Below are positions 2,240 through 64,000 of a stretch of 64,000 nucleotides of DNA, piece after piece. Source of the DNA: Eukaryota sp. TZLM1-RC (taxonomy: Eukaryota > Protista > Metamonada: BaSk clade); the NCBI GenBank assembly GCA_040285825.1, contig JAUPSS010000012.1, positions 124,001 to 188,000 of the forward strand, written 5' to 3'. A program made the translations under genes and the position numbers. Under the pieces are notes generated by a model. It was not told where the DNA came from and did not search any database. It saw nothing but the letters and a program-made list of their open reading frames with translations. How positions within the stretch are numbered: the first letter of the stretch is position 1; the number at the start of each line of letters is the position of its first letter.

Positions 2240-2830
2240 TTATAAATAAGAAATGCCTTCAGTGAAAAAATATCCACGAGGATGATTACAAGCAGGACAA
2301 ATTTCAGGAGCCTCCTCAGCATAATGAATGTGACCACAGTTGGAGCAAACCCAATATAAAGGAGTAGGGGAGGTATATAACTCGTTGGACTGCAACTTTT
2401 TGAGGAAGTAAGTGAATCTCTTTCCGTGGTATTCCTCAGCCTTCGCGATGGCTTCGAAAAGGGCAGCGATTTCAGGGAATCCTTCAGATCGAGCAGTAGC
2501 AGCTGCGTCAATATAAGCAACGCTATACTCATGTGTTTCCCCCTCAATAGCATCCTTCAGATTAGTGATAGTATCAGCTACGCGTGCTTTTCCAGGAACA
2601 GAGGCAGGGAAAGTGTTCGTGATGGTTACTTCACCTCCTTGTAAAGCACCATAGAATTGATTGGCATGTTGCCTTTCCATTCCGGCAGTTTCAGCGAAAA
2701 GCTTTCCAATGAACTGATGACCCTCCTTGGAGGCGGCTTTGCCAAACAGTTCGTATCTATGGGCAGCTACCGATTCATTAACGAAACTAGTAATGAGATT
2801 CTTTTCAGTTTGGGTTCCAGTGAGTGACAT
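2240..2830 (-). CDS. rbr: Rubrerythrin
   Basis: Likely ATG at 2830 (MSLTGTQTEKNL); di-iron ExxH motifs (ERQH, EEYH) and C-terminal rubredoxin-like CSNC...CPAC. Confidence 0.93.
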   Translation of the reverse strand: MSLTGTQTEKNLITSFVNESVAAHRYELFGKAASKEGHQFIGKLFAETAGMERQHANQFYGALQGGEVTITNTFPASVPGKARVADTITNLKDAIEGETHEYSVAYIDAAATARSEGFPEIAALFEAIAKAEEYHGKRFTYFLKKLQSNELYTSPTPLYWVCSNCGHIHYAEEAPEICPACNHPRGYFFTEGISYL

Positions 2831-4095
2831 GTTGTTTAAATGATGATTAAAGGTTTCCGTAATCGCAAATAACAAAACGACAGCTCATCGGTGATGAGTC
2901 ATCACATTTTTCAATTAAATAATAAACCATTTGTCCCATTAAAAATCAATGTGAAATACTGAACTTGCAACACCTTGAAATACACCGCCCAGGGTGTATC
3001 TCTATCATTCTATCCCATCAAACAACTATATACGGGATTCTCTAGCAGAAAGACGCAATACGAGCAATTGAGAGCCTGAAATGCCAATTCTTTACATGGT
3101 TTTCATTTAAGACATGGCAAAGAGTAACTTTTTCATCAACGAAATACAACTATTGACAACTATTCCTCTGACTGAAACTTCAAAAGGAAATAATTGGACG
3201 AAAAAAATCCAAATTTGAAAATAACAATTGAAGACTCTAATATTTCCAAGTGTCAATTGGAAATTACAATTACAATATATTTTTGAATTTGTTCAATTTT
3301 TCAAAGAAAAATCTGTGTATTTTCCAGTGTATTTTGTTTTTTTAAGTACGTCTACTATCTCAATGTTGTTCCGTCAATGAAGTCAACACACAAATCAGGA
3401 CTCTCTTCCTTCTTGCTTCATCCATATTTTTTGAGATAAGATTCCGATCAGTTCTTAACTCAGTCGTATCCAAAGGAAAATTTACATAATGATTTTTGTG
3501 ATAAGGTAAATCGCAGTAAAAACCATATAATCTAGGAAAGGCAGCAAGAATTCTTTCCATTTTTCTGTAATTTGTTTGTTTTAACCGCTATACGTTCAAC
3601 TCCTCCTACATAGGTTTGGCTCTGCAATCAACAAACGCACTAAATGGAAAGCATGTTGGTGTCCATTGTCCTCTTTCTAATGAGTTGAAATCTGGGAAGA
3701 AGTATTTTTTGGCGAATACTTTAGCCCCAAACTCTAGAATAGAAGTATTCAAAAATATGGGAAATTGATACAGCTAACTTCACTCAACTTAAAATCACAA
3801 AACCCATATCAATTCCTTGGTCTGAAAGGGGTCTTCTCAAAACAGTGTTCGGTGGTGCGATGGTGCGCTCAGTGCAAAACACATTTTATTAGTACGTGTC
3901 CAATAATCGACATTTATAATTCAAGATATAATGTTGAATCAGCAAATCTAAATCTGTGAAACAATTATTACAAACTGAATTGTGGACACAAAAACTTTTG
4001 TACTTGGTTATCAATTAAATTAATCTCATTCAAGAAGTCAGTGGACAATTCGTTCAAATCTTGGTCAAGTGCGTACTTGAACCGCTGGTGAACCG

Positions 4096-10606: not shown

Positions 10607-12254
10607 CTATCTCACTGCAGAACGTTTTTCTTCAATCTGTTCCTCACTAAGCTGAAAGTCAAACTTGACTGTCTGTTCGCAACCAGTAGACCTGACCTTT
10701 GTGTATACTGTGAGTAACCCTTCCTCATTAATGACAAATTGGACTTTAACCCGTTCAGAAGATGCAGGGGCAGGAGTTATGGGAACCTTAAAGCTATTCA
10801 CTAAGCGATTCTGACCACTGGAACAAACCCCTTTACACTTGGACTTAGTTTTCTGCAGCACATCTGAATCCTCGTCATTACAACTTCCCTGGTAAATGTG
10901 CACCATTACATGGTCTTGGTTATCTTCAAGATTGGTAAAAAAAAGGGTTCTATTTACGGGTAATTTGGTGGGGTTTCCTTTAATGTCAGTCTTGTTGAAG
11001 TAATGAATGACATCAGACTCATTATCAGTACCTAGAGCCAATCCTAGAATAGTGGTTGGTGTTGGTCCAGGGTTAGGATCATCAATTTTAGTACGTCCTA
11101 CCCAGGCAGCTCCTTCCACAACGATAGTCTCCTCGTTAAGGTTGCGAAGCGGTTCCCTTCCAAAGAAATCTGTAATTCGGCTTCTGATTAAGGGGACTCG
11201 AGAACCTCCTCCAACAAGGATGACATCATCAATGTTGTCTTTTGTGAGATTGGCAGTGTGAAGAACAGACGAGATCTTTTCCATACACTGGTCGACTAAA
11301 GGGGAAACGAGTGCATCAAACTGAAAGCGGCTGAGTTCTAGTTCTAGATCTTCATTACCAAAGAAGAAGTCTGCTTGAATCTGCGTCTGTGGAAGAGAGA
11401 CGTCACTGAGTTGGTGCTTGGCGTCTTGGATCAAACCGCGAAGTTTGAGTTTTTGTTTTGAAGATATCCACTTCTCTGGAATCTTGTAATCTTCTTCAAT
11501 TTCCTCGCAGGCCCACTCAGCTATGGCATTGTCAAAATCTTCCCCACCCAATTTTGAGTGACCATCTGTGGCAATCTCGTGTGGGACAGAGTTTTCAATT
11601 TTGATGACAGTAACATCTAATGTACCTATAGTTAAAAAGAGCAGATGGTGTAAACAAACCACCACCAAGATCAAAGACAAGCAGTGTACGGTTTTCAATA
11701 TCGGGGTTTTTGTGTAGGTAATAGTAAGCTGCCGCAGTGGGTTCATTGATTACTTGAATAGGGTTGAGACCCGCAACTCTGTACGCATCAGATAGAACTT
11801 GTCGCTGGCGAACATCAAAACGTGCAGGACAAGTAATTACACAATCTTTTGGAACATCTCCGTCAAATCTGGCCATGGAAGTGGTATATAATCGTTGAAT
11901 ATAAGAGGCAGTGAGATCCTCAGGTGTATATTGGTGACCACCCAAAATGATTTGAATATTGTCATGTTCATCTCCTTGAACTGGGAAGGAGAAATGAGGC
12001 AGAAGCTTTTGTACTACTGGATCACTAAAACGTCTGCCAAGTAGTCTTTTGACTGCCCAAACAGTTGAATCAACAAAGTCCATTCTACGATTGAAGGAGT
12101 TTTCCCCAAAAAGGGTTTCCTCTTTCTTGACAGTAAGGAAAGAAGGAGTTACAGATTTTCCCTGCACAGATGGTATAACATGAGAAGCATCATCAATAGA
12201 ACGTACATAAGCCACTGTGGAATTTGTGGTGCCAAAGTCAATTCCAAGTGTCAT
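10607..12254 (-). CDS. Atypical Hsp70-family protein A (about 537 aa; intron 11626-11659)
   Basis: GIDFGTTNS, VFDLGGGTLDV (restored by removing a 34-nt GT-AG intron), ILVGGGSRVP; no lid helix or EEVD. Confidence 0.9.
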
Positions 12255-18181: not shown

Positions 18182-18401
18182 TATAAACATGATAATCAAA
18201 CTCGACATTAATAAAGTAACAATTTAAGACACAACATACCGTATCTAAAGTGCGTATCATTGTTTAAAATTCAGGATAAAATGGATTAAGATTGTGTGAT
18301 ACAATCAGAACTGGTGTTCAGGAATAACAATTTTTAGATAATTCCTTCCTATTCAAATTTTGGTATTGTTTGTATTTCAACTCCTAAACTCTAACTACTT
18401 C

Positions 18402-20124
18402 ATGTCTAGACTAGTTTTAGGCATAGATTTTGGAACAACCAACAGCTGCGTTGGTTGTGTACTTTCTAGTGACAATGCAAACCACGTTGTTCTCAATGGA
18501 CAAGGCAATCCCACAACACCTTCCTTTATTTCTCATGCGGGGGAGGATTATATATGTGGTGAACTTTCTTACAATCGCAGGGTCCAGCAAGGAGAAAGTA
18601 CAGTTTACGCATTTAAACGTCTGCTTGGTAAACGTTGGGCAGATCGCGAATTGCACGAGGCTCTCGGGTACCTTCCGTTTGAAGTTACAGAAGATGTATC
18701 AGGTAATCCTCAGATCAATTTAGGAGGACGTTATTGGACTGCGGAAGACCTAACAGCACTTTACCTCAAACATCTGTATACAGTAGCACTCAAAAGATTA
18801 GAATCATCAGTTCAGGATTCTGATGTTCCAAAAGATTGTGTAATTACTTGCCCTGCACGTTTTGATGTTCGCCAGCGACAAGTTCTATCTGATGCGTACA
18901 GAGTTGCGGGTCTCAACCCTATTCAAGTAATCAATGAACCCACTGCGGCAGCTTACTATTACCTACACAAAAACCCCGATATTGAAAACCGTACACTGCT
19001 TGTCTTTGATCTTGGTGGTGGTTTGTTTACACCATCTGCTCTTTTTAACTATAGGTACATTAGATGTTACTGTCATCAAAATTGAAAACTCTGTCCCACA
19101 CGAGATTGCCACAGATGGTCACTCAAAATTGGGTGGGGAAGATTTTGACAATGTACTCCTTGATTGGGCTTTTGATGAAATTGAAGAAGAATTTGTTGAA
19201 CAAAACGCAAATCGTCATGTTTTCAAGCCCAAAGAACTACTTCGTCTCAAGGACGCCCTACAGCAAGCTAAGCACCAACTAAGTGATACTAGTCTCGATG
19301 AGACTAACATCGAGATCGCATCTTTCATTAAAGGTGAAGATCTGGAACTAGAACTCAGCCGAGATGAATTTGATGAACTTGTTTCCCCTTTGGTCGACCA
19401 GTGTATGGAAAAGATCTCGTCTGTTCTACACACTGCCAAGCTCACAAAAGACGACATTGATGATGTCATCCTTGTTGGAGGAGGTTCTCGAGTCCCTTTA
19501 ATCAGAAGCCGAATTACAGATTTCTTTGGAAGGGAACCCCTTCGCAACCTTAATGAGGACACTATCGTTGCGGAAGGAGCTGCCTGGGTAGGACGTACTA
19601 AAATTGATGATCCTAACCCTGGACCAACACCAACCACTATTCTAGGATTGGCTCTAGGTACTGATAATGAGTCTGGTGTCATTCATTATTTTGGAAAAAC
19701 AGATTTAGAAGGAAATCCCACCAAATTACCTATAGAACGAACCCTTACTTTTACCAATGTTATAGATAATGCCAGAAGTATCTCGGTTAGAATCTACCAA
19801 GGAATCTGCAATGATGATGATCAAAGAATACTCCAACCTAGTGGAACCAAATGCCGAGGCGTATGTCAGAGTGGAGGCAATCATAACCGCCTCATTGACC
19901 AATTCGAAGTTCCGATTCCCCAGTCAGCAGCAAGAACTGAGCGAGTGAAGGTCACGTTCTCAATTGATACCCAGGGCTTTTTAACCATTATGACAACAGT
20001 TAAGTCAACTGGTGCAGTACGCACGGTTTCTTTCAATTACAATCTAAGCCAAGAACAGATTGCTGAAAAAGCTGGGGAAGAGCGGTTCAATATGTGCATA
20101 GATCAAGTTCTTTGTGATGAATGA
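18402..20124 (+). CDS. Atypical Hsp70-family protein B (about 562 aa; intron 19021-19054)
   Basis: LGIDFGTTNS, DLGGGTLDV after splicing a 34-nt GT-AG intron, ILVGGGSRVP; paralog of 10607-12254 in inverted orientation. Confidence 0.9.
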
Positions 20125-26531: not shown

Positions 26532-27760
26532 ATATTTATTGAATTTGCACACTTGATTAAATTAAATCATAACTAATGGGACGACTATCATTAAACCAAG
26601 ATTTCCTCTACAAAATCTTGATTTGCTTGCTGTCTAGCTAAAGCTTCTCTAATTCGATTGAAAAACCGCGGTAATCTATTAATAATGGCAAATTGAATCC
26701 GTGAACGCCATAAAAAAATATCAAATCTTTTCATTGTTTTTTCTTTCACCATTTTTTGGAAGTCATCCAAAAAAGTTTCTGCTTCAACTGATAATCTTCC
26801 ATTTATCGAAAATGGGAAAGCAATAAAAACCAGCTGTGTATTTCTATCGACATTTGCATCTTCAATTTCTTTATCATATTTTCTATGTTTTTCTTTTGCT
26901 TTAAAAATCCAGAGCAGCCACAGGATTAAGTTTTCTTCTGTGAACCAAAGTATCGTTTGCAACATTACATGAGACAAAAGTCAACAATAGCTTCAGAATT
27001 ATCAATCCAATCACAGTATACATCACCTCTATCATCAGAACCAAAATTATTCAGAGAAAGTGTTTCCTTCAGCAGGGGCTCTTTGATACACGATATCCTT
27101 GCAGTTTGTGCCATATTGAAAACAGTGTCTCTAACAGCATCATGTAATGAAGAACGATAAGTTATCAATTTAGAGCAATTTAGAGCATGGCGCAAAGTGA
27201 GTTGAGGTGAATTCGAACAAATACATTTTTCTTTTGATAATAATTGGTTAATGGGGATGTTCAAATATAATCTCATTTTTGTTACAAATGCTTCACTAGT
27301 GGCACACAATCCAAATCTTCGTGGTACAATGGTTACAAAAAGTGAAGAATCTGACGCCTTGTTTTCACAAACACCCTTTTCCAATAACAATGAGTGAAGA
27401 TCTTGATTTAAAACAGCCGAGCTGCAAATATTATTATAAAGATCTTTTTCATACATTCCAGTCAATCTTTTCTGTAATGTTCGAAGAGTGTACTTCAAAT
27501 TTAAAACATTTTTTTCTGGAATATTGCCATTGAATGATTGGGGAAAACATCGACCCCATTTTTCTACATCAATTCTTGAAATTTCTTCATTTAATGCAAA
27601 AACAGTGGAACTTTGCGTTGTCATCAATAAATCTTCCCAATCTGCAAATCTTTCGGAAAACTCAAAGATTGCATTTCTGCATCCACCAACAAAAGCACAC
27701 GAGGTAAGAATAGAAGCCTTCGTCCACCCCAAACCACCATAATGTGGACTAAATGTGGTT
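26532..27760 (-). mobile_element. Young 5'-truncated CRE-like family A insertion upstream of catalase
   Basis: Near-identical to 23961-25195; 12-bp TSD TCAATTATTATT (26520-26531, 27761-27772). Confidence 0.92.
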
Positions 27761-27866
27761 TCAATTATTATTGAAACAAATTCAACAAATTCTGTAGACC
27801 CCACTGTAGACCCCCTCATTGAACCAGAGAAAGCATGATGATTAACAATATTCATCTCACAACTCA

Positions 27867-29504
27867 ATGTACGCTCCAACAGATGTCGCTGCAAGACTTA
27901 CTGGTTTCAGTGCTTCCAAGCCCAATGAATCTGAACGTGTAACAGATTCTTTTGGCCATGTTCTACCATCCACAACTCACCATCTTAATGTGGCAAACAT
28001 GCCACTCGCAGCTGATGTTCACCTCTTTGAGAAACAACAAGCTTTCAATCGTATGTGACAACTCACAACTGGCTCACCACATGTGCAAAAACAACTGAAC
28101 GAATGGTTCATCCTTGTGGAAGTGGCGCTTTTGGATACTTTGAGGTTGAACGTGATGTCACAAGCCTTTGTAAAGCTGACTTTTTATCTTCCATTGGCAA
28201 AAGAACTCCAGTTTGTTTAATATCATAATCTTATTACAGATCTTCACTCGATTCAGCACCACTACCTATGGTCGTGAATTTCCTGACTCTGCACGTAATG
28301 TAAGAGGATTTGCAATCAAGTTCTATACTGAAGAGGGCAATTATGACATCTTGGGTCTCAATTGTATGTGCTTCTTCCATCACTCACCACATGGCCAGTG
28401 TTTTTTGTTCGCAACCCAATGAAAGGACCTGATCTCATCAGAAGTCAACAAAGAAACCCTCAATCCGGATTACTTGACTATGAAGCTTTGTTTAGCTATC
28501 TTGCCGAAAACCCTGAAGCATTACATGCAGGCACAATGCACTTCTCGGATAGAGGTACACCTAAAGGATGGCGGTTCATGGATGGCTTTGGTTGCCATAC
28601 ATTCAAATGGGTGAACTCAAAGGGTGATCAGATCTACATCAAGTACCACTTCCTCTGTGAAGCAGGCAAGCAAGAGTTCACTGATGAAGAGGCTCAGCAA
28701 ATGTGTGGTCAAGATCCAGACTATTCTAAACGGGATTTATTCAATCATATCCAACAAGGTAGGTAAAAACTAAAAAAAAACGATCTAACTTCAGGTGGTG
28801 AGTGTACATGGAAGATTGCTGTCCAAATGATGACCCCTGATCAAGCAAACAGGGCTGACTTTGACCCATTTGATGTTACCAAAGTCTGGCCCCATGCTGA
28901 TTTCCCTCTTCAGCAGTTTGGAAAACTTGTGCTCAACCGTAATCCTGAAAACTTCCATCGTGACGTTGAACAAGCTGCCTTCAATCCTGGGAATCTTGTA
29001 CCGGGAATCGAACCCTCTCCTGACGCCTTGCTTCAATGGAGGATGATGTTCTACCGTGACGCTCAGTACCACAGACTAGGTGTTAACCACCACCAACTAC
29101 CAGTTAACTGTCCTTTCATGGCTCGTTATCAGAATCCACAAACCAGAGATGGACAACAACGATTGGACAGCAATGGAGTTGGTCACCCTTCTGTTATTTG
29201 TTCTTCCAAGAATGAAGGCAAAGTTGATTCATCCGTAGATTTTCACCCATTCATGATTAGAGAGGCTACTGTTGACAGAGAGTCTGCATATCGTCATGAA
29301 GGGTCAGATTCTGACTATGACCAGGTGAGAGAACTTGTGGAAAGAGTTCTCAACCAGCAGAAGAGGGAAAATCTCTACAAAAACACAGCAAAGTATTTGA
29401 GATTGTGCTCATTGGATACTCAAAGCAAGTATTTATCTCAGTTAAGCAAAATCTCTACTGGATATGCTGATGGCGTCAAAAGATGGTTAGAGAAGGCCAA
29501 GTGA
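27867..29504 (+). CDS. cat: Heme catalase (about 503 aa; introns 28051-28082, 28211-28239, 28364-28392, 28759-28794)
   Basis: Spliced frame gives [24 protein letters not shown] (distal His), [34 protein letters not shown], and [14 protein letters not shown] (proximal Tyr). Exon lengths sum to 1512 nt. Confidence 0.93.
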
Positions 29505-30155
29505 GTTTGTATAGGCTGAACTGTTGTAAAATCTTTTGTAATGATCAGATTGTGTTTCTAAACTTTACACTAAAAGAGAACAAAAAAGTTTCAAATTTCA
29601 GGAATCAACAGGTGACAGCATCATTTTTCTTCTAAGTTTGGTAATCCCATGTGGTCTAAACCATTGAATCAACCATTATCAAAGAAGGAGTGAGCTTTGG
29701 TTCAACAACATTTTAATGATTTAGTTCATGCAAGAAGACAACGTTTGCAACTCACCATTTTGAACTCTTGCGATCATTGATTAGAAGTCAAAGTCAACTT
29801 CTTAGGGTTTGAGTAAATTGTTTTTCACAATTTCTGTAATTTGTTTGGCTATTTCTCGATTTCACCACATTGAAATTATTCCATGCCAGTGCTTCTTCTA
29901 AAAAAGGGTCAATTGAAACAGGACTATCTTGAGAAGGACATCCCGTAGGTGGACGTGTTGAGAAATCGAATCAAACAAATCAAAGGGAAGTTGAAAACTA
30001 TAGAGATGTAGGTGGATTCTGTATCAAATGGGTTACAGACAGTTCAACATACCATATATATTTCGTCTTAATGGCTGCAAGTTCATTAAATAGGATACCT
30101 GAATTAAAGTCTGTCGATTCATGAGGTCAATCCTATTTAAATCATTTTTCCCAAA

Positions 30156-31407: not shown

Positions 31408-31981
31408 CTATTGAAAACTGTAATAAGCCTTGTTGTGCACTATAAGCTCATCTTCCACAAAGTAAAAAGTATCACTAACAGTTTCGAAAGGGTGCTCAAT
31501 CATCTTTTGCTTTTCTTTTTTGGACAACTGAGGCATAACGTAGATCGATTCCCATGAATTAGTTGAATTGGGGATGACAAAGCCAAATTCAAAATCAAAA
31601 GACTTAATTAGCTTATCTTTATAGTAGAACCGTTCGATTAATCTGTGGTGAGGGCCGCTTTGATTGTTGATACCTTAGTTTAGGGATGGGACGATCTCCT
31701 ACAGAAAAGGTAAGGCTTGTACCTACTGTGGAAAGGTCCAAAAAGGCCGTTGGAAATTGATAACGCACAGTTCTTTGTTCTGGATCTGAAGGGTCCATAG
31801 ACATTGTTCCTACCATTTGAGTGGAATCCTGGTCCTGAGATATATGAAAAAGGACTGTTTTGGACTCGGGATCTCTGACACGAAATGAAGTAAATTGTAT
31901 GTTATAAGTGTTAGCTGTAGGAGGACAAAGAAAACCTTGTTGAGGACGTTTGCTATTCAGTATGTCATTTGGAGAGACCAT
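31408..31981 (-). CDS. UNC119: Unc119 lipidated-cargo carrier (about 180 aa; intron 31643-31673)
   Basis: FLCPPTANTYNIQFTSFRVRD, RTVRYQF, FSVGDRPI; after a 31-nt GT-AG intron, LIERFYYKDKLIKSFDFEFGFVIPNSTNSWESIY...HNKAYYSFQ*. Confidence 0.92.
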
Positions 31982-32059: not shown

Positions 32060-34200
32060 AATTAGTTGTTTGTCATTAACGAATTTACATTTTCTCAATC
32101 CAACGTTGACTCTTCCACTGCTTGCGCATTGCCCTCTGTATTCTGTCAAAGAATTGTTGGAGGTTTGATCCTATTATGATTATGTCATCAATGTAAATGA
32201 ATACACCTTCTATTCGAAAAATGTCCATCATTACATTTTGAAAAATTGCTGGGATATTCTTTAATCCGAAACATGCCTTTTTAAATATAATAGATCTGCC
32301 AAGAATAGAGATAGATGTCTTTTCAATATCTTCGTCAGCCACTTTCATTTGCCAGAAAGCTTTTGGAAGATCCAAAGTGGCAATAAAATCCTCCTGATGC
32401 TTTTAAGTTCTTTGGTTGTTGGTTAGGAAACGTGCCTCAAATTCAGAATGAATTGCAAGTTATTTTGGAAAAAATGAAAATTGAACTTGATTCAATTTCT
32501 TCTTTAGATCTAGAAAAACATATTAAATTTTTCATGCTTAAAATTTGCTACACTGGGAGAATAACCCACATTTTGAGATCTTGTGCTCCTTCCATAGCAT
32601 TAGATTTTTGTCGTTCATTTAATTCATTGAGAACAGAATTTTTTGCTGATTTATTGGATGTAGAACCAGGAATGTTGAAAAGTCACTTATTTTCTTCAGC
32701 AAATTTGGGTGGTATTGGATTTACTAAATCTTCAATTTTGTGTCAATCAGCATTCTTGGGTGGTGGCAAAAATTTTATTTATGAATTTTCTCGTAGATTT
32801 CCTGATGATTCTCATCTGTTAGTTCCCAATTGCAGTCCTTATTTGTATGAGTTATCTTGTGAACTTGAAAAATTGCCGCCACAAATTTGGACCAAATGTT
32901 TTCCTCAATCAATTCAAGAAACTCCAAACCGATCTCTTTTTAATTTACAGTTTTGCTGTAAAAAGCTTCAACAAAAATTGTCAAAGATTTTTGAAAGCTT
33001 GGATTTTGATGTTAGACTTGGCTTGGCCAAGAAAAAGAATCCCGCTTTTGCAAATCTTTTACAAGATATGTGTGACAGTACTTCTTCTGCCTTAGTAACA
33101 ACAATTCCACAAGTTTATGGTACTCTCTTATCCGATTCTGCTTGGACTCTGAATATGAGATTTCGTTCCTTTATCTGGCCTGATAATTTACCTCATAATT
33201 TAATTTGTAAATGTTCTCAAGAAAATACAACTACTCATTTGTTAAATTGTAAACATTTTATTACTTTTAGAAGCAAGGTTCATGATGCTGTAAGAGACCA
33301 GTTATATTGTATGTGTAAATCTCATAGAATTGAATCCTTCTTGGAACCTTTGTTGTCAAATCTGTTTGATGCTGAAAATGATTTTCATAAGAATGATAGA
33401 GGTGATGTCATATTACCTGGATTAGATGGAAGCTTCATTTTATTGGATGTAATGTCTGTTGATCCTTGTAATGCCTCAAATGAAAGGCTTGTTAATTCTG
33501 AAATTCATAATCCCCTTTCAAATGCTGAAAATTTTAAATTCAAAAATACAATGAACCTTTGTCCAAATTGGCCAGTCTACAGCATGCAAAATACAATTTG
33601 TATCCATTTGTATTTTCCCTTTTGGTTCACTTGCACCAACTGCTTTACGTTTTTGGATGATTTTGAAATGATTGTAAAGAGAAGAACTGGCAGAAATTTC
33701 AACAGATTGTTTTGGCAAAAATAGAATTGTGTTTTCTATTTTTAAGGGGATGTTGAAGATGGTTTTTGATGCTTTGCTTTCTCTTGGATCTCACTATGAG
33801 AGAGTTGCATCTAGTGTTTTTGTTTTGGGAGAGATGGATTTTTTAGATGTTGATTTATAGGTTTTGAATAAAATTAAAATTTTGGTAAAAAAAATCCTCC
33901 TCACTTAAAAATTCTAAAACATCTGAATTTAATGGTGAGTTAGACTAGACCGGAATTGTATGAGCGTTAACTCCATCTTTACCACTGAAGTCGCCCATCA
34001 ACCTAGGTTTTCGACCATCAGGGTATATAACTAATTCTATTGGGGAACTAAACTTGGAGTTTGCTTCACTTGCATAGCCCATTTCAATCAATTCATCAAA
34101 TATCTGATTGACCATTTGTAATTTCTTTGGGTTGAGACCCTGTGCTGGTTTGTGTACAATTGTATTAGTATTGTAGAAGGGGATTGTCATGGGTGGACAA
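32060..34200 (-). pseudogene. Ty3/Gypsy-like reverse transcriptase remnant, interrupted by a non-LTR insertion
   Basis: SKFSSPI...KPRLMGDF (33945-34190) joins DVLEFLSEEDFIATLDLPKAFWQ...FGLKNIPAIFQ...YIDDII once 32396-33890 and one TSD are removed. Confidence 0.82.
32396..33890 (+). mobile_element. 5'-truncated CRE-like retrotransposon, family C
   Basis: GGIG, CKC...HLLNC, HDAVRD, EPLL, RGDVILPG motifs; 11-bp TSD AAAATCCTCCT (32385-32395, 33891-33901). Confidence 0.9.
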
Positions 34201-34439
34201 TCGATTCCGATTAATCAGACAAACTTTTTTTTCTCACTATCATCCAAATTAATCGTTAAATTATCAGTCTTCCTGTTCCTCCCTCTAACATGGAAAACTT
34301 TGTCCCTCTTTCTCCTCCCCCTGGTTCTGAAGAGGAAGTTCCTGTAACGCTCGAAAAGAAGAAAGGGCAGTGTTAGCCTTGTTAACCTTTTAATCAATTG
34401 TTGATAGATTTTATTTCAACAGAAGTCAATCAATGAGGA

Positions 34440-34530
34440 TCAAGATCACAAGAGACGTGGTGACCTTATTGGGTATTGTACTGATTGCGAAGAACACTTA
34501 TTGGACTTCACTACCATTGAATCCCTGCAA
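34440..34530 (+). mobile_element. Tiny RLE nuclease fragment from another non-LTR family
   Basis: Translates QDHKRRGDLIGYCTDCEEHLLDFTTI, similar to RRGDLIAPF...VVDFTTVDP at 47087-47896. Confidence 0.5.
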
Positions 34531-35115
34531 CAAGTAGCTACTGCTGGTTACAGAAATCATATTTTAATTTCTTAGAATATATTCATAAAGTTCAATTTGA
34601 GAAGTTTAAGAGTTGAACTATTCGAACCTTGAATTTTAGTAGACAAAATTCTTGAATTTGTAATCGTTATGCTGTTCCTCTTTATAAATTTTTTTGATCC
34701 AAGTGCAAAATAAAAATTCAAAATTGTGTCGAGGTTCGGAACCTGGAGAAAATTTCAATAACTCTTAAAGCACAAATTAAGATACATTTTCACTGATTAA
34801 AAACATACCTACATATGTGGATAACATTGCAAAAACCACATACAAATTGAATTGCAGTGTTGATCGAAACAATAAAGTAGTGGATAAACAATTACCTTTA
34901 CAGGATGTTTTGTTCAATATTTTCTTTTGTTTGATTTTGTTTATTTTGTGTGACAATACAACACAGTTTTGTTGTTAACTTCTAGAACATTGTGTGAATG
35001 TACCAAGGAACAACTTAACTGACCACAAATAAAATCATTTGCAATTTCAAACAAATAGTTGTTCAAAGGTATTTATACATACCATACCATACTTTATCAT
35101 CGAATATGCATTGTG

Positions 35116-35197
35116 GCTGATATATCCAAGTGGTTACGGAGGTTGACTTGAAATCAACTGGGCTATGCCCGCGCAGGTTCGAATCCTGCTGTCAGCG
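35116..35197 (+). tRNA. tRNA-Ser (anticodon UGA)
   Basis: Acceptor stem GCTGATA/TGTCAGC, anticodon arm GTTGA-CTTGAAA-TCAAC, long variable arm GGGC-TAT-GCCC, T-loop GTTCGAATC, G discriminator. Confidence 0.95.
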
Positions 35198-38746: not shown

Positions 38747-40896
38747 GGGAAAAGTACACATCTACCCATTTTTGCAAAAAGTGGAACACGTCTACCCACC
38801 ACAATAAAGTGAACACATCTACCCACTTTTTTACTGATAGGACTTCTTTGCAGATTGGACATGACAACAACCTCTTCCGTTGTTGCTGAATCAACTATAA
38901 CTCTCAAACATAACGACACCGATTATCTCTTGAAAATCGGTTCCCTGGCTTCGATGGAAATCATAAAGGAACTGATTCGGCTAGATTGTGTCCAGAGCAG
39001 TGCCTATTGTGTCTACAAAAAGTCTGAACATACAAGAATTTATGCTCGTTGCAAAAATAAAAGATGTACGTTTGAATGCTATGCTACACGACCTAAATCC
39101 GCTTCTACAACAACTCCTTATGAGGTTAAGCGGTATAAAGCTCATTCCTGTGATGGTAATCTAACTTCTTCCTACAAGATTCTTCCTCCTTCCACAGATT
39201 ACCTTGCCTCTTTGACATCCATTCGTACAAAAATCCAAAAGGATCCTGCCATCAGCTCCAAGCATTTGAAAGTGGATTTAAACACAGCGGCTGGATTTAT
39301 ACTTCCCAATCACACTGTTAAGCGGGTACGGAACACGATTAAAACCAGTCTTTATGGAACTGAAGAATCAAGCTACAAAAAACTGGACCACTACTTGGAA
39401 CTTTTAAGTCAAAGAAACCCCGGAAGTGTTATTGATCTTGAAAAGGATACAACTGACACCTTTAGACGACTCTTCATAGCGCTGCAAGGTACAATCAAGG
39501 GATTTGCATTTTGTCGTTCAATGGTTCTTCTGGATGGGACGCACTTGAAAACCAAACATAAACAAATGTTGTTGACATCCACGTCCATTGATGCAGAGGG
39601 CCATTTGTTTCCACTGGCCTTTGCAGTAGTGTCGACCGAAAACAAAGACAACTGGACCTGGTTTTGTCAACGTTTTCGTGATGCATATGGTTCAGATATC
39701 AACACCATTGTTTCCGACAGAGAAAAAGGACTTTGCGATGCGGTTGCTACTGTTTTTGTTACTGCCAAACACGCTTTTTGTGTTCGCCATTTGACCAAAA
39801 ATATGGGGGCGAGGTTCACAGGATTTATTTGGAGTGCAGCTAGAGCTACAACAACTGACGAATTTGATCTCATAATGAATGAAATCCGTTGTCAATCAAA
39901 ACCAGTGTATGAGAAACTGATAAAGGGTGGAAAACATCATTGGGCAACCTGTTATTTCGAAGGACTCCGTTACGGACATTTGACGTCCAATGTAGTTGAA
40001 AGCTTGAATGCTTGGCTTCTTGGAGCAAGAGGTATGCCTCTTGTTAGTATGATCAACGAAATTTGCTTGAAACTGACAAAATGGTTTGAGGAAAGAAGAA
40101 CTGAAGCGATGAACACAACATCCATTGTTTGCAAATCATTGTGGGCAAAGTTGAAGAGCACTGTTGTTGAAGCTCGCAGTTTAGAAGTTTTGACAATTTC
40201 CAGGGGAGGGGGAGGTTCAGTGCTGAAGGTTACACAGCATGAAAAATCATGGTTGGTGGATTTGAGCAAACAATGTTGTTCATGTGAATTTTGGGACAAC
40301 TATGGATACCCTTGTGTTCATGCGGTGGCAGCACTTTTATATATGGACAAAAACATAGTGAGTGCAGTGGACCTTTATTATTCGAGAGAGAATTATGCCA
40401 GAACTTACGAGGAGGGAATTATGTCAGTAGACCAAAGTATTGAACTAAAAGAGACAGAAACTCAAGCACCACAAGTTGTAAGGCAAAGAGGAAGACCACG
40501 TCAACGACGGTTCCGAGCTGGAGAAGGGCAGAGAAAGAAGAAACAAAGAGATGGAGGAGAGATACCAGACAGTGAAGTTCCAGAACTCACACTCGTCCGC
40601 CAGCAGTTTGGTGTAGAAGGCAGCAGCGATGATTCAGATTGGAGTGAATTGGAAAAATCTTCTGCATTGGAAGACTTAGTTGAAGATCAATAGAGATTAG
40701 GGAGGTTTATTGTATGCTTAACATGTCCATAAACGGTTTATTTGATGTTTGAGATGAGTTTGGTGAACGTACCAAGTAATTAAGAAACACAAACATGATT
40801 ACATCATCAAACAAATCGGGATGGATAAGTTTCCTTAAAACAATTGGGTACAGAAGTACCAAAAAATTCAGCAGTGGGTAGGTGTGTCCCTGACCC
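38747..40896 (+). mobile_element. Mutator-like (MULE) DNA transposon, apparently intact
   Basis: Perfect 9-bp TSD AATAAAAAA (38738-38746, 40897-40905); termini GGG...CCC with the inverted motif ACACAYCTACCCA, present three times at the left end. Confidence 0.92.
38855..40693 (+). CDS. MULE transposase with SWIM zinc finger
   Basis: LLDGTHL, IVSDREKGL, HAFCVRHL (CxxH), TSNVVESLN (DDE triad), CSCEFWDNYGYPCVH (SWIM), RGRPRQRR; uninterrupted 612-aa frame. Confidence 0.93.
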   Translation: MDMTTTSSVVAESTITLKHNDTDYLLKIGSLASMEIIKELIRLDCVQSSAYCVYKKSEHTRIYARCKNKRCTFECYATRPKSASTTTPYEVKRYKAHSCDGNLTSSYKILPPSTDYLASLTSIRTKIQKDPAISSKHLKVDLNTAAGFILPNHTVKRVRNTIKTSLYGTEESSYKKLDHYLELLSQRNPGSVIDLEKDTTDTFRRLFIALQGTIKGFAFCRSMVLLDGTHLKTKHKQMLLTSTSIDAEGHLFPLAFAVVSTENKDNWTWFCQRFRDAYGSDINTIVSDREKGLCDAVATVFVTAKHAFCVRHLTKNMGARFTGFIWSAARATTTDEFDLIMNEIRCQSKPVYEKLIKGGKHHWATCYFEGLRYGHLTSNVVESLNAWLLGARGMPLVSMINEICLKLTKWFEERRTEAMNTTSIVCKSLWAKLKSTVVEARSLEVLTISRGGGGSVLKVTQHEKSWLVDLSKQCCSCEFWDNYGYPCVHAVAALLYMDKNIVSAVDLYYSRENYARTYEEGIMSVDQSIELKETETQAPQVVRQRGRPRQRRFRAGEGQRKKKQRDGGEIPDSEVPELTLVRQQFGVEGSSDDSDWSELEKSSALEDLVEDQ

Positions 40897-55789: not shown

Positions 55790-58700
55790 TCTTTCTTGTT
55801 GATGCCTGAATCAGTTTCTGATTCTAATGGAGTCAAAAGAAAGAATGATAGACAACAAGAAGCTCAAGACATCCTTTCCACCTCTCCTCCTCAACCTCTT
55901 CTCTCTTCATTTTTGGACAAAAAAAATTCTGATCAAGAATTTTTAGACAATCACGATGAAAAAAAAGTTTGTTCAAAAACAAAGCCACGCTCCTACAGAT
56001 GCTCAAAGTGTCGACAACAGGGACATAATGCTCGAACATGCCCCAATGTTGGAAAAAATGATGCGGCAAATTCTGAAACAAAATGTAAAAGAAAATTTAT
56101 TAGAAGGAAAGAGTCTAAGGTAGAACCCATAAATAATGCTCCACAAGTTGTTGCAAAACCAGTTAGCAATCGATTGAAGCACAAAACTTGCAACACTTGT
56201 GGTATTTCTTTTAGAAAAAATGCAAAAGGAAAAACTTCTGATCGCTGCTTGAAATGCCGCATAGTTGATAACTACCATCCTCCTATAAGAATACCTCAAG
56301 AAATTCATCCGACCAAATGCAATGAATTTGCTTTCGTTTTTCAAAGATTTTTGGATCAATTATGTAAAGGAAAGTATGCTATCAATAATATTTGGGAATT
56401 TTTTTGGTTCTTTTTGTCCTCCTTTTGAACAAAATTTCGTTAATATTTCCGAAGATTTAACTAATATAGCACCGAGAAATCAGTCATCCGAGAAATTAAG
56501 TAAAATTTTTGAAGACAAATGCTTTGACAACAAATGGTCCAAGGCTTTGTCAGCTTTAAGTCCCGGAGTCAAAGCACCAAACAATGAAAATACAATAGAA
56601 AAACTGAAAATTCTTCATCCTTATGAAGACCCTATAATGGATCAAAATTTTTACGGCACATACTGGGAAAATTATCCATTGATGCCATCAGAAGTTTTTT
56701 CGGTTATCAAAAAGAGACCTCGTGGTAAGTCTGCCGGACTTTCTGGTATTACTATTGATCATGTAAAAGCCGCGATTATTTCTTCAGAAGATTGCCTTGG
56801 TTTATTGACTAAATTTTTCAACCAAATATTATCTGACTTTCTGGTATTAATATTGATCATTTAAAAGCCGCAATTATTTCTTCAGAGGATTGTCTTGGTT
56901 TATTAACCAAATTTTACAACAAAATATTGACTGGACAACTCAGATACCCAGAAGAATTAAGAAGTTCTCGTTTGACTGCACTTGTCAAAAATTCAAAAAT
57001 GGATGTTCGTCCTATTGCAGTCTCTGAGAGCTTACACAATATTTTTTCTGCGTGTTGCTTAAGCAGGTTCAATGAAAAAGCTAAAAAGATTTTATTACCC
57101 TTTCAATATGGTATAAATACTACAGATGGAGTCTCTTCAGCGATTTTTGCTACTGATGTCTTATTTCGTCAAAATGAATTCAATGTTTGCATGTCATTGG
57201 ATTTTAGTAATGCTTTCAATTCACTAAGTCGTCGCAGTATCCATGGTGCTCTATTGCAATATATGCCGGAATTAATACCATATTTTCAATCAACTTATTG
57301 CACATATTCTAATTTCCTTTTTGGTAACAACATTTTGAGTTCATCAAGTGGCGTAAAGCAAGGAGATCCGTTAGGACCTCTTTTGTTTTGTTTGGCCATC
57401 CATCCTATTCTACTGCAAATTCAAGAGATGTTTCCTTCACTAAAAATGATTGCATATATGGATGATGTTGTGCTTATTGGTGATTTAAATATTGTGAAAC
57501 AAGCAACTGTATGTTTTAAAGAATTATTTGCCAAAATTGGTCTCCGACTTAATTTACTTAAATGTGTTTTGTTATCGAATTCTCCAGTTTCCACAATAGT
57601 TGATGATATTGAAATTCAAGCCAAATTATATTCAATTGATGCTGTTCGTCATTCGGGTTCGTTTTTAGGAAATAATGATGAAATTACCAAACAATTGTTA
57701 GAAAAGTTGAACTCAATTTCTGACAAAATTGACCGAATGATGAATTTAGATATAAAAAAACACATCAAATTTACCATTATAAGACTGTGTTTCAGTTCCA
57801 ATTTTAATCATATATTTCGATCAACAAATCCTCTCGTCACTAGACCTTTGGCTCAAAAGTTTAATGAGTTACGTGCAAAAGTTCTGTCTCAATTACTGGG
57901 ATGTAAAATATTTCAAATTCCAGATCATGCTTACCTTAGTCCACATTATGGTGGTTTAGGGTGGACGAAGGCTTCTATTCTTACCTCATGTGCTTTTGTT
58001 GGTGGATGCAGAAATGCAATCTTTGAGTTTTCCGAAAGATTTGCAGATTGGGAAGATTTATTGATGACAACGCAAAGTTCCACTGTTTTTGCATTAAATG
58101 AAGAAATTTCAAGACTTGATGTAGAAAAATGGGGTCGATGTTTTCCCCAATCATTCAATGGCAATATTCCAGAAAAAAATGTTTTAAATTTGAAGTACAC
58201 TCTTCGAACATTACAGAAACGATTGACTGGAATGTATGAAAAAGATCTTTATAATAATATATGCAGCTCGGCTGTTTTAGATCAAGATCTTCACTCATTG
58301 TTATTGGAAAAGTGTGTTTGTGAAAACAAGTCGTCAGATTCTTCACTTTTTGTAACCATTGTACCACGAAGATTTGGATTGTGTGCCACTAATGAAGCAT
58401 TTGTAACAAAAATGAGATTATATTTGAACATCCCCATTAAATATTTTTTTTATTTATTGAATTTGCACACTTAATTAAATTAACTCAATACTAATCGGAC
58501 GACTATCATTGAACCTATTAACCATTAACCAGTTATTATTAAAAGAAAAATGTATTTGTTCGAATTCACCTCAACTCACTTTGCGCCATGCTCTGAATTG
58601 CTTGTTTATTGATAACTTATCGTTCTTCATTACATGATGCTGTTAGAGACACTGTTTTCAATATGGCACAAACTGCAAGGATATCGTGTATCAAAGAGCC

Positions 58701-61049: not shown

Positions 61050-64000
61050 ACTCTCCCCACCCTTCATGCTATGCTCGAACTTCTTCTCAAAAAAATTTGA
61101 AAATTTTTAAAGAAGATTTTTTGCCTTTGTGTGATGCCCCTGATATTATGTCTGAAAAAGTGCAAAAAACAAGACAAACCTGTTCCAAATGTGGCAAGGT
61201 TGGTCATAACATTAGAAAATGTCCTGATATTATTACCGAAAAAATGAGACTGAAAACCGATATTTCTATTGTTAATAGTTTGCAAACGCCATCCAAACTG
61301 AATCTTCCTCCTGTTCCCAATGTTTCTGCTGATGATGTTTATTATGATTTAAATATTGATCAAACTCATTTACCAAAAACTGTTGCTCCTGATCCTACTG
61401 ATAATGTCTTGAAACATAATTGTCCTTTTTGCAAAAAGTTCCTCTCTAATTCTTCTAATGGTCGCCCTCTCTTGTTTTGTTTTGACTGTCAAACAGGTGA
61501 TTCTCTTCGTGCACCTGTTAAAATTCCTGTAGAGGTGAGTCCTGCCAGTACTGTTCCTATGTCAATGGAAATGCGTTCTTTTTCTTCGCAATTGAAATTA
61601 AACAAATGGAACATAACAAGATTTTGGAAATTCTTTGCCAAAAAGAATAAGAAGAAAATTAATTACAAACCAAAACAGAGAAAAGCTAATTCATCTTTTC
61701 AAGCAAAAAAATTGTTTTTGAGAGGTAGATATGGAAGCAGATTAAAAAATATTTTTTCGGGAAAACTGGCTGATAACAATCTCGCAACTGTTGAAAAATT
61801 GAAATCCCTCCATCCAACTGAAAATTTTTGCCCCAGTAAGCCTTCTATTTGTCAATATTGGCTCGAAAATCCATTTCAGCCTCAAGAAGTATTGAATGCC
61901 GTTGCCAAATTACCAAAAGGAAAAGCTGCTGGTCCTTCAGGCATTTCCTTTGATTTGTTGAAAATTGCCTGTAAAAATGCTCCTGAAATTGTTGAGGATC
62001 TTGCTTCCTATTTTCAAAATTTAATGTGTTTGAATTATGTTCCTCCGCCTGAATTGACTGCTGCCCGTTTAGTTGCTTTAGTTAAACCTGGTAAAGGTGA
62101 CAAACCTGATGGAGTTAGACCAATTGCTATTGGAGAGTCATTAACCAGATTGCTTTGTTCGCTTATTTTTAACAGAATTTCTACTAAAGCAAAGGATCAT
62201 TTGAAGCCTTTCCAATTTGGTATAAAAACTGTTGAGTGTGCTTCTGTTGCTTCAATGACTTCAGATGTTTTTTTCAATAGTCAACAACATCAATATATTT
62301 TCAATTTGGATTTCAAAAATGCTTTCAATTCTGTGAAACGTAATTGTATTTTTGATTCGCTTCTTCAAGATTTTCCAGAACTTTCTGCATATTTTTATTT
62401 ATTTTATGGAAAAAAATCAGACTTAATTTTTGACTCCTTTACCCTTGAATCTTCTTCTGGTGTGAAACAAGGTGATCCTCTTGGCCCTTTGCTGTTTTGT
62501 TTGGCTATTCATATTATTATTAAAATGACACAACAAGATTTTCCTGATTTGCGCATTGTTGCCTTTATGGATGACATTTCTATTATTGGTTCTTTTGAAA
62601 GCATTTCTATGGTCTCTGAAGACATTGCGGCGAAATACAAAGAAATTGGATTATCTTTGAACCCATCTAAATGTCTCTTGATTGGTAGAGGAAAACAATC
62701 TTTGATGTTTGGTAAAGCTCAGATTCCTTTTATCAATTATGACCAACAAGCTTTTAAGTTTCTTGGATGTTGGCTTGGCAATTTGGATGAAATTTATTCC
62801 CAGTTAAACAATTTATTGGAGAAGTTTGACAAGGATCTTAGTTTTATTGCTGAATGTGACAATGAGAAACACATCAAATTTTTTATTTTAAAAATCTGTT
62901 ATTCTGGAAAATTCACTCATATTTTAAGGTCAACTCCCCCATCGGTATCTCTCAATTTTTGCAGATCTTTTAACAAACTTCGAGTCAAATTTTTTTCTTC
63001 TTTATTTAGAAGTAAATGAATCTTTAATTCGAAGTCATGTATTTTGTTCAGCAGATTTGGGTGGAATGGGATTCACCAAATCTTCGATTCTGTGTAAAGC
63101 AGCATTTTTGGGAGGTGGTAAAAATTTTGTTTTTGAATTTTTCCAAAGGTTCCCTTTTGATGTTCATCTGATCAATGGTGAATCAAATTTTTACTTGAAT
63201 CAACTGGAATTTGAATTAGAAAATTTGCCTAGTGATATCTGGATTCAGTGTTTTCCTCAAAATGTGCAAGAAATTCCCACCCGATCACTTCCAAATTTAC
63301 GTTTTTTGCTTGAAAAAGCTTCAGCACCATCTGGTTAAATTATATGAAGTCTTGGATTATGAAGTAAGACTTGGCTTGGCCAAAACTAAAAATCCCGCTT
63401 TCGGTAATTTTTTAAAGGATAGTCGTGATAGTTCAGCTGCTGCTTTAGTAACTCAAGTTCCCTCTGTTTATGGACTTTTGTTAAAAAACAATGAATGGCT
63501 TCTAAACATGCGTTTTCGTTGTTTTCTGTGGCCAAACAATTTGCCCAATCATTTAACTTGTAAATGTGGTAAACCTCTTTTGTTTACTCATCTTTTGAAC
63601 TGTAAACATTTCATTACGTTTAGAAGCAAAGTGTATAATAACGTCAGGGACCAAATTTATGTAATGTGCAAATCATATCGAGTAGATTCCTTTTTAGTAC
63701 CGCTGTTATCAAAATTAATTCTTGATGATCCCAATATTGATAGTACGCGTTACAACAGAGCTTCTATGGGTTTGACTAGAGGTGATCTAGTTGTTCCTGG
63801 TTTAAATGGTAGTTTTACTATTTTGGACGCCATGTCTATTGACCCTTGTAATTCCTCTAACGAACATCTCATTAACTCGGATGTAAATAATCCTCTTCTT
63901 GCAGGCGAAAAATATAAAATTGCTAAATATGCGAAACCCATTTCCTCGGTTAATGAAAATTCTCATGCCCAATATAATTTATGTCCATTTGTTTTTTCTT
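61050..64000 (+). mobile_element. Near full-length CRE-like retrotransposon, family B (runs off the window)
   Basis: CSKCGKVGHNIRKC, RPIAIGE, LDFKNAFNS, GVKQGDPLGP, FMDD, then GGMG and the RLE region after frameshifts near 63005 and 63305. Confidence 0.93.

Follow-up and report, generated by a model that had tools for sequence, protein, structure and literature searches.

The catalase gene of Skoliomonas litria contains two apparent micro-introns (introns 1 and 3, Table 1) that end in AT in place of AG. In the most probable reading (about 0.7) both are young U2-type introns that the major spliceosome would remove at a CAU acceptor, with a fixed distance from the branch point setting the 3′ end and U being tolerated in place of the terminal G. 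What is new here is the occurrence of two apparently obligatory, lineage-specific GT-AT micro-introns in a single gene of a genome with fixed branch-point spacing.

The catalase gene and its public model

S. litria (TZLM1-RC) is a free-living anaerobic metamonad (PMC11603281), a flagellate of soda lakes. Its polished assembly of 31.9 Mb (55% repeats) is built from 41x Nanopore and 206x Illumina coverage, and the gene models come from two RNA-seq-trained predictors, GeneMark-ET and AUGUSTUS (PMC11316075). The DNA analysed here, referred to as the window, is a 64,000-nucleotide stretch of contig JAUPSS010000012.1 (GCA_040285825.1) for which the position in the record equals the window position plus 124000. 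The last catalase exon is identical (100%) to part of a TZLM1-RC protein listed at NCBI. The spliced catalase has the features of a monofunctional heme catalase, including both Pfam domains (PF00199 and PF06628) and intact motifs for the distal His and Asn and the proximal Tyr. The main text of the genome paper makes no mention of catalase. A second peroxide-defence gene, encoding a rubrerythrin with a rubredoxin-like domain, lies 25 kb from catalase (window 2240-2875, minus strand).

The NCBI model KAL0205224.1 (window 28103-29504) takes an internal Met of exon 2 as its start and so lacks exon 1, while at intron 3 it uses the AG at 28398, replacing W-P-V by L. Neither AT end is used in this RNA-trained model. 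Gene predictors of this type normally cannot call AT ends, and a start in exon 2 combined with a downstream AG is what a predictor restricted to AG would be expected to produce. KAL0205224.1 is wrong at both junctions and needs correction.

Table 1. Positions of the catalase features and of the loci compared with them (window coordinates unless a locus is named).
Feature	Position	Strand	Description
Catalase gene	27867-29504	+	five exons, four introns; 503 codons when spliced, no internal stop
Exon 1	27867..28050	+	aligns with residues 1-61 of the sister-species catalases; missing from the NCBI model
Intron 1	28051..28082	+	32 nt, GT-AT, phase 1 in Arg of FNR; branch motif CTCAC, A at 28076
Exon 2	28083..28210	+	distal catalytic His (VHP); Pfam Catalase positions 42-81
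Intron 2	28211..28239	+	29 nt, GT-AG, phase 0
Exon 3	28240..28363	+	ends at catalytic Asn (GLN); Pfam Catalase positions 82-122
Intron 3	28364..28392	+	29 nt, GT-AT, phase 1 in Trp of NWP; branch motif CTCAC, A at 28386
In-frame AG	28397..28398	+	6 nt past intron 3; site of the NCBI model; use would remove two conserved residues beside the catalytic Asn
Exon 4	28393..28758	+	Pfam Catalase positions 124-244
Intron 4	28759..28794	+	36 nt, GT-AG, phase 1
Exon 5	28795..29504	+	proximal Tyr ligand motif, Catalase-rel domain, up to stop codon
Unc119 intron (control)	31643..31673	-	31 nt, GT-AG; same 9 nt ahead of the terminal base as introns 1 and 3
Catalase loci, three Skoliomonas species	window 27867-29504; L002:10001-11567; L003:10001-11691		4, 2 and 4 introns
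Vps4 loci, three Skoliomonas species	L005:6889-8822; L012:10001-11475; L013:10001-11362		

Homologues fix both junctions

The earlier note on this DNA had described two segments that start with GTATGTG, end with CTCACCACAT and contain no AG, in a gene otherwise free of lesions and interrupted by two GT-AG introns, and this description is borne out (Table 1). The resemblance it had pointed out to the end of the Unc119 intron also holds: the 9-mer CTCACCACA is common to both segments and to the Unc119 intron end, and is present in 3 copies in the window versus 0.48 expected, a count reached in 0 of 100 shuffles. Retention of intron 1 leads to a stop at codon 64, and retention of intron 3 to a stop at codon 165.

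When the exons are aligned one by one with the catalase orthologue of the sister species GEMRC, exon 1 reaches residue 61 and exon 2 resumes at residue 63, and similarly exon 3 extends to residue 145 and exon 4 begins at residue 147. At each junction the one codon left over is supplied by the split codon (1+2 nt), and this is true for all five homologues compared. The spacing restored at junction 1, with four residues between FNR and ER, is found in 112 of 118 full-length homologues, and at junction 3 [FW]P[VI] follows G[LI]N in 115 of the 118. Both cuts can be shifted by +1 (TA...TG) to give an identical mRNA, thus RNA-seq alone cannot fix the termini.

Introns 1 and 3 follow the Skoliomonas layout

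The canonical set used for comparison comprises 24 introns from three Skoliomonas species, each delimited through its annotated length or by aligning the protein, with 3 of the 24 picked between two solutions by motif. These introns are 27-36 nt long, mostly start with GT[AT]TGT, and contain a YTNAY branch motif whose A is at -7 in 23 of the 24, a count that is slightly inflated because a branch-point filter had served to detect some of them. The single exception (A at -8) is the Vps4 intron of GEMRC. AG is the terminal dinucleotide of all 24 canonical introns, which points to a strong preference for it. Introns 1 and 3 match the genus layout in all but the last base (GTATGT donor, CTCAC with A at -7) and have the highest leave-one-out motif score (14.8). 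The donor, the species-typical branch position and the restored frame are those of U2-type introns, and the departure from that type in the assembly is at the terminal AG.

Introns are sparse in S. litria, with about ten canonical ones in 157.5 kb and most genes having none. A motif scan of these 157.5 kb (0.5% of the genome) in which the last base was ignored recovers, at a score of at least 14.5, five AG-ending introns together with introns 1 and 3 as the sole AT-ending matches, compared with a chance expectation of 0.23 T-ending matches per scan in Markov-resampled sequence. Both AT-ending matches fall exactly where the catalase frame requires removal.

Other classes of intron fit poorly. 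A U12-type assignment is rejected on the basis of the donor, which is GTATGTG and not RTATCCTT, and of the CTCAC at -10 to -6, which is not a CCTTAAC-type motif 10-20 nt from the 3′ end. A search for snRNAs in the 149 kb scanned found none. Removal of the euglenid nonconventional type, or guided by a hairpin, is likewise rejected: the segments fold no better than shuffled sequences (z +0.5 and +0.9) and a branch motif is present.

Several additional candidates were considered and not accepted. A weaker 28-nt GT-AT candidate located 340 nt past the catalase stop (window 29843-29870, plus strand) has no ORF or gene around it, a second (window 34815-34843, minus strand) has no flanking gene, and a third (L005:12604) lies in a start codon context. 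A 36-nt candidate in Skoliomonas sp. RCL (L012:19097-19132, plus strand, score 15.7) was set aside for want of a flanking ORF; it ends in the same TCACCACAT and then G, lies in unannotated AT-rich DNA, and may be a chance match or a non-coding intron. Metagenome scans for a related locus found none, and the only exact match to the 21-nt pattern falls in a GC-rich contig with no similarity to catalase and is a chance match. Elsewhere in the window, the gaps between unannotated ORF pieces at 34291-34590 (plus strand) look like introns but depart from the -7 branch rule, an identical 34-nt intron is present in two divergent Hsp70-like genes in inverted arrangement (10607-12254, minus strand, and 18360-20124, plus strand), and a tRNA-Ser(TGA) gene is found at 35116-35197 (plus strand).

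A 3′ splice site probably set by distance

With the branch A at -7, that is 6 nt before the last base, in introns of about 30 nt, there would be one docking place for the 3′ end. A single docking place after branching would mean that the 3′ site is picked by distance and not by scanning for AG, and introns 1 and 3 suggest that the S. litria splicing machinery may locate intron ends mainly by their distance from the branch point. The yeast factor Prp18 is responsible both for YAG fidelity and for keeping the spacing to at least about 10 nt, but is dispensable for substrates with a short branch distance; in its absence the non-G acceptors used most are CAU and UAU, and a U(-1):G(+1) pair has been proposed that C or A cannot form (PMC10711555). 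Introns 1 and 3 retain A(-2), which by analogy with this yeast work would contact the branch A, and their U at -1 would still be able to pair with G(+1) of the donor. The weak end may be offset by the near-optimal donor (GTATGT) and branch motif, and leniency about the last base is what one would expect of a spliceosome that has adapted to a spacing of 6 nt. In Trichomonas, moving the branch motif abolishes splicing (PMC6679479). Both introns originated within the S. litria line, and the catalase gene has been acquiring introns in each of the three species.

The tolerance of a non-G terminal base that the earlier note had attributed to this spliceosome is indirectly supported by the intact gene under purifying selection, by the junctions fixed by homologues, and by the genus donor and branch signals at standard spacing. 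To call a non-G end unprecedented in kind would overstate the case, since U2-type GT-AT introns have been published. A bolder version of events, unlikely in our estimation, would have the Skoliomonas spliceosome shed its second-step checks on the 3′ site (Prp18/Slu7 or U2AF) because a 6-nt ruler measures its introns. Obligatory non-AG introns, GT-AT here and perhaps GT-TG in other places, would then form a genome-wide class, and new ones would be copies of existing micro-introns, the two in catalase being sisters within one gene and possibly kept weak to regulate it.

Possible regulation by oxygen

Deliberately weak introns could throttle catalase by being retained, with premature stops, in anoxia and spliced under O2 or H2O2. 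Both introns are located in an oxidative-defence gene, their retention yields early stops, and T is kept at both ends though the interiors share little and one change would restore AG. Against this, neither intron is conserved in the catalases of the two sister species, which have the same lifestyle, and the 157.5 kb contain no other example; the weak, regulated class gating catalase that the earlier note had offered as a possibility is not upheld. We regard such throttling as distinctly unlikely, but it is compatible with the preferred reading of U2-type introns with a distance-set end and not exclusive of it.

Intron gain in the catalase gene

The catalase orthologues of GEMRC and RCL are uninterrupted at the sites of both intron 1 and intron 3. 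Given the species tree (RCL,(GEMRC, litria)) (PMC11603281), absence in both sisters indicates that the two introns were gained in the S. litria line. The three catalase genes contain four (S. litria), two (GEMRC) and four (RCL) introns, all GT-AG in GEMRC and RCL, and none of the ten positions is common. In the Vps4 control one intron position is common to all three species, with one extra in S. litria, showing that old introns do persist. A second Vps4 paralogue, with no annotated MIT domain, is present in S. litria and RCL. The unshared catalase introns amid mostly intronless genes suggest that intron gain may be active.

The Skoliomonas catalases form one clade (100/99) positioned beside oomycete and metagenome sequences in a mainly fungal group. 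Of the outside homologues, the nearest lies on a eukaryotic metagenome contig and is intronless, and a chytrid catalase has three introns at other positions. Fornicates are without catalase (PMC6934886). It is plausible that catalase would have arrived laterally and free of introns, with separate intron gains thereafter.

At their ends introns 1 and 3 have 7+9 bases in common. Among 210 pairs of canonical introns the highest value is 14, and the probability of the observed sharing is about 2e-4 under a model of independent positions. Their interiors are unalike, and no further copies of either were found in 157.5 kb of S. litria (0.5% of the genome). The shared ends may mean that both descend from one parent intron by copying inside the gene, or that selection favoured the best motif; both predict the pattern. 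The same sharing, together with the absence of both segments from the orthologues of close relatives, is also what non-spliceosomal or introner-like inserts would show if their removal relied on paired ends or used the +1 register (TA...TG); in addition, ATGTG and CACAT at the two ends make up a 5-bp inverted repeat, and there is a 2-nt direct repeat at each junction. However, the inverted repeat is almost wholly explained by the donor and acceptor consensus, the segments have no stable fold (the z values given above), the differing interiors and the lack of more copies in the 157.5 kb speak against such inserts, and the genus-standard branch spacing fits the GT-AT register only, leaving this origin very unlikely.

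Many non-LTR retrotransposon copies and a MULE transposase are found in the window at 26965-27894 (minus strand), 32432-33724, 56927-58474, 61097-63019 and 38855-40693, and one non-LTR copy ends right at the catalase start. We propose that the retrotransposons could readily supply reverse transcriptase for the gain of introns.

The terminal T and alternative intron ends

If the assembly were in error, both terminal bases would actually be G. The assembly is Nanopore-based and both T residues are in the same sequence context, as with a systematic miscall. In one sequencing run compared with this DNA, two 151-nt S. litria records fall over Unc119 and none over catalase. Such a G-to-T miscall would deplete words containing G, and these are not depleted in the 157.5 kb (ACAGG 172 seen, 177 expected; CCACAGG 10 versus 6.6), which counts against it. 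Given also the polishing and the depth of both read types (PMC11316075), and 1.5 kb of coding sequence without other lesion, we consider an error highly improbable.

The claim that the frame is restored only by these two cuts holds in so far as both junctions are fixed by homologues, but it overlooked the in-frame AG located 6 nt past intron 3. Intron 1 could be a GT-AT intron while intron 3 is wholly or mostly spliced at this AG, the annotated site, as a 35-nt GT-AG intron encoding a protein minus two residues after the catalytic Asn. The branch A would then sit at -13 and not at -7, the resulting one-residue spacing is found in 0 of 118 homologues, and the W-P-V codons read unbroken over the AT junction, in agreement with both sister species, making this option no less improbable than an assembly error. 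For intron 1 the nearest AG lies 40 nt on, out of frame and beyond the catalytic His. As judged from the alignments, no AG alternative at either intron would keep the conserved catalase protein. A stwintron is rejected by the lack of an internal AG, skipping of exon 2 by the frameshift and loss of the catalytic His, and skipping of exon 4 by the loss of 122 core residues.

Compared with GEMRC, the catalase differs by 0.50-0.61 at third positions versus 0.11-0.21 at second positions, with dN of 0.15-0.30 and dS of 2.3 or saturated, and the S. litria gene has the shortest branch among the three Skoliomonas species. By these sequence measures S. litria catalase is under purifying selection. Least probable of all is a recent pseudogene or near-null allele in which the introns stay in and no catalase is made, as might suit an anaerobic host whose sister group Fornicata lacks catalase (PMC6934886), for it requires that the same G-to-T change occurred twice, or that two insertions shaped like introns did, while the rest of the gene stayed free of stops and frameshifts, and is at odds with the strong third-position bias, the short branch and the intact orthologues in both sister species.

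Implications

GT-AT introns are already known rarities and no rule is overturned. Introns 1 and 3 offer a natural test of the structural prediction that a 3′ site set by distance lets U, and only U, replace the terminal G. Because the public catalase model is wrong at both junctions, AG-only annotation may hide other genes in these metamonad genomes. The ten intron positions of catalase, none of them shared among the three related species, also make this gene a compact case for the study of intron origin.

Comparison with known systems

A literature search for Skoliomonas introns found no paper. U2-type introns with a fused branch point and 3′ site, whose splicing depends on spacing, are known in Giardia, Spironucleus and Trichomonas, and these resemble the S. 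litria introns in their short length, GTATGT-type donor, fixed branch-to-3′-end spacing and metamonad host. They end in AG, however, and Skoliomonas has the branch A at -7 in a looser motif, YTNAY NN YAG (PMC6679479).

The U12-type GT-AT introns of human, mouse and Physarum have the same terminal dinucleotides and a similarly narrow branch-to-3′-end distance (PMC1557818, 10.1101/2020.10.12.336362), and in Physarum GT-AT accounts for 17% of non-canonical U12 introns (10.1101/2020.10.12.336362). In contrast, the S. litria introns are without the RTATCCTT donor or a U12 branch motif. Yeast lacking Prp18 also uses a CAU acceptor near the branch point, but those events are errors of a mutant in a system with a natural minimum spacing of 10, whereas the S. 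litria sites are apparently obligatory, wild-type and at 6 nt (PMC10711555). Fritillaria borealis and introners provide examples of recently gained introns outside the GT-AG rule; in F. borealis these constitute 95% of introns and U2AF is duplicated, whereas in S. litria they are about 2 of 12 sampled introns and no repeat family was found in the 157.5 kb (10.1101/2025.08.15.670264).

Mammalian DGCR2 pairs a U2-type donor with an AT acceptor, as in S. litria, but there it concerns one intron, which human and mouse have both kept, in a genome that uses exon definition, while catalase has two lineage-specific micro-introns (PMC1557818). In the close relative Giardia duodenalis, the DinF intron is GT-AT, 30 nt long and of the branch-motif (type A) class. 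DinF is spliced in 1.3% of reads, whereas in S. litria catalase splicing would be needed for any product, and twice in one gene (PMC10711314).
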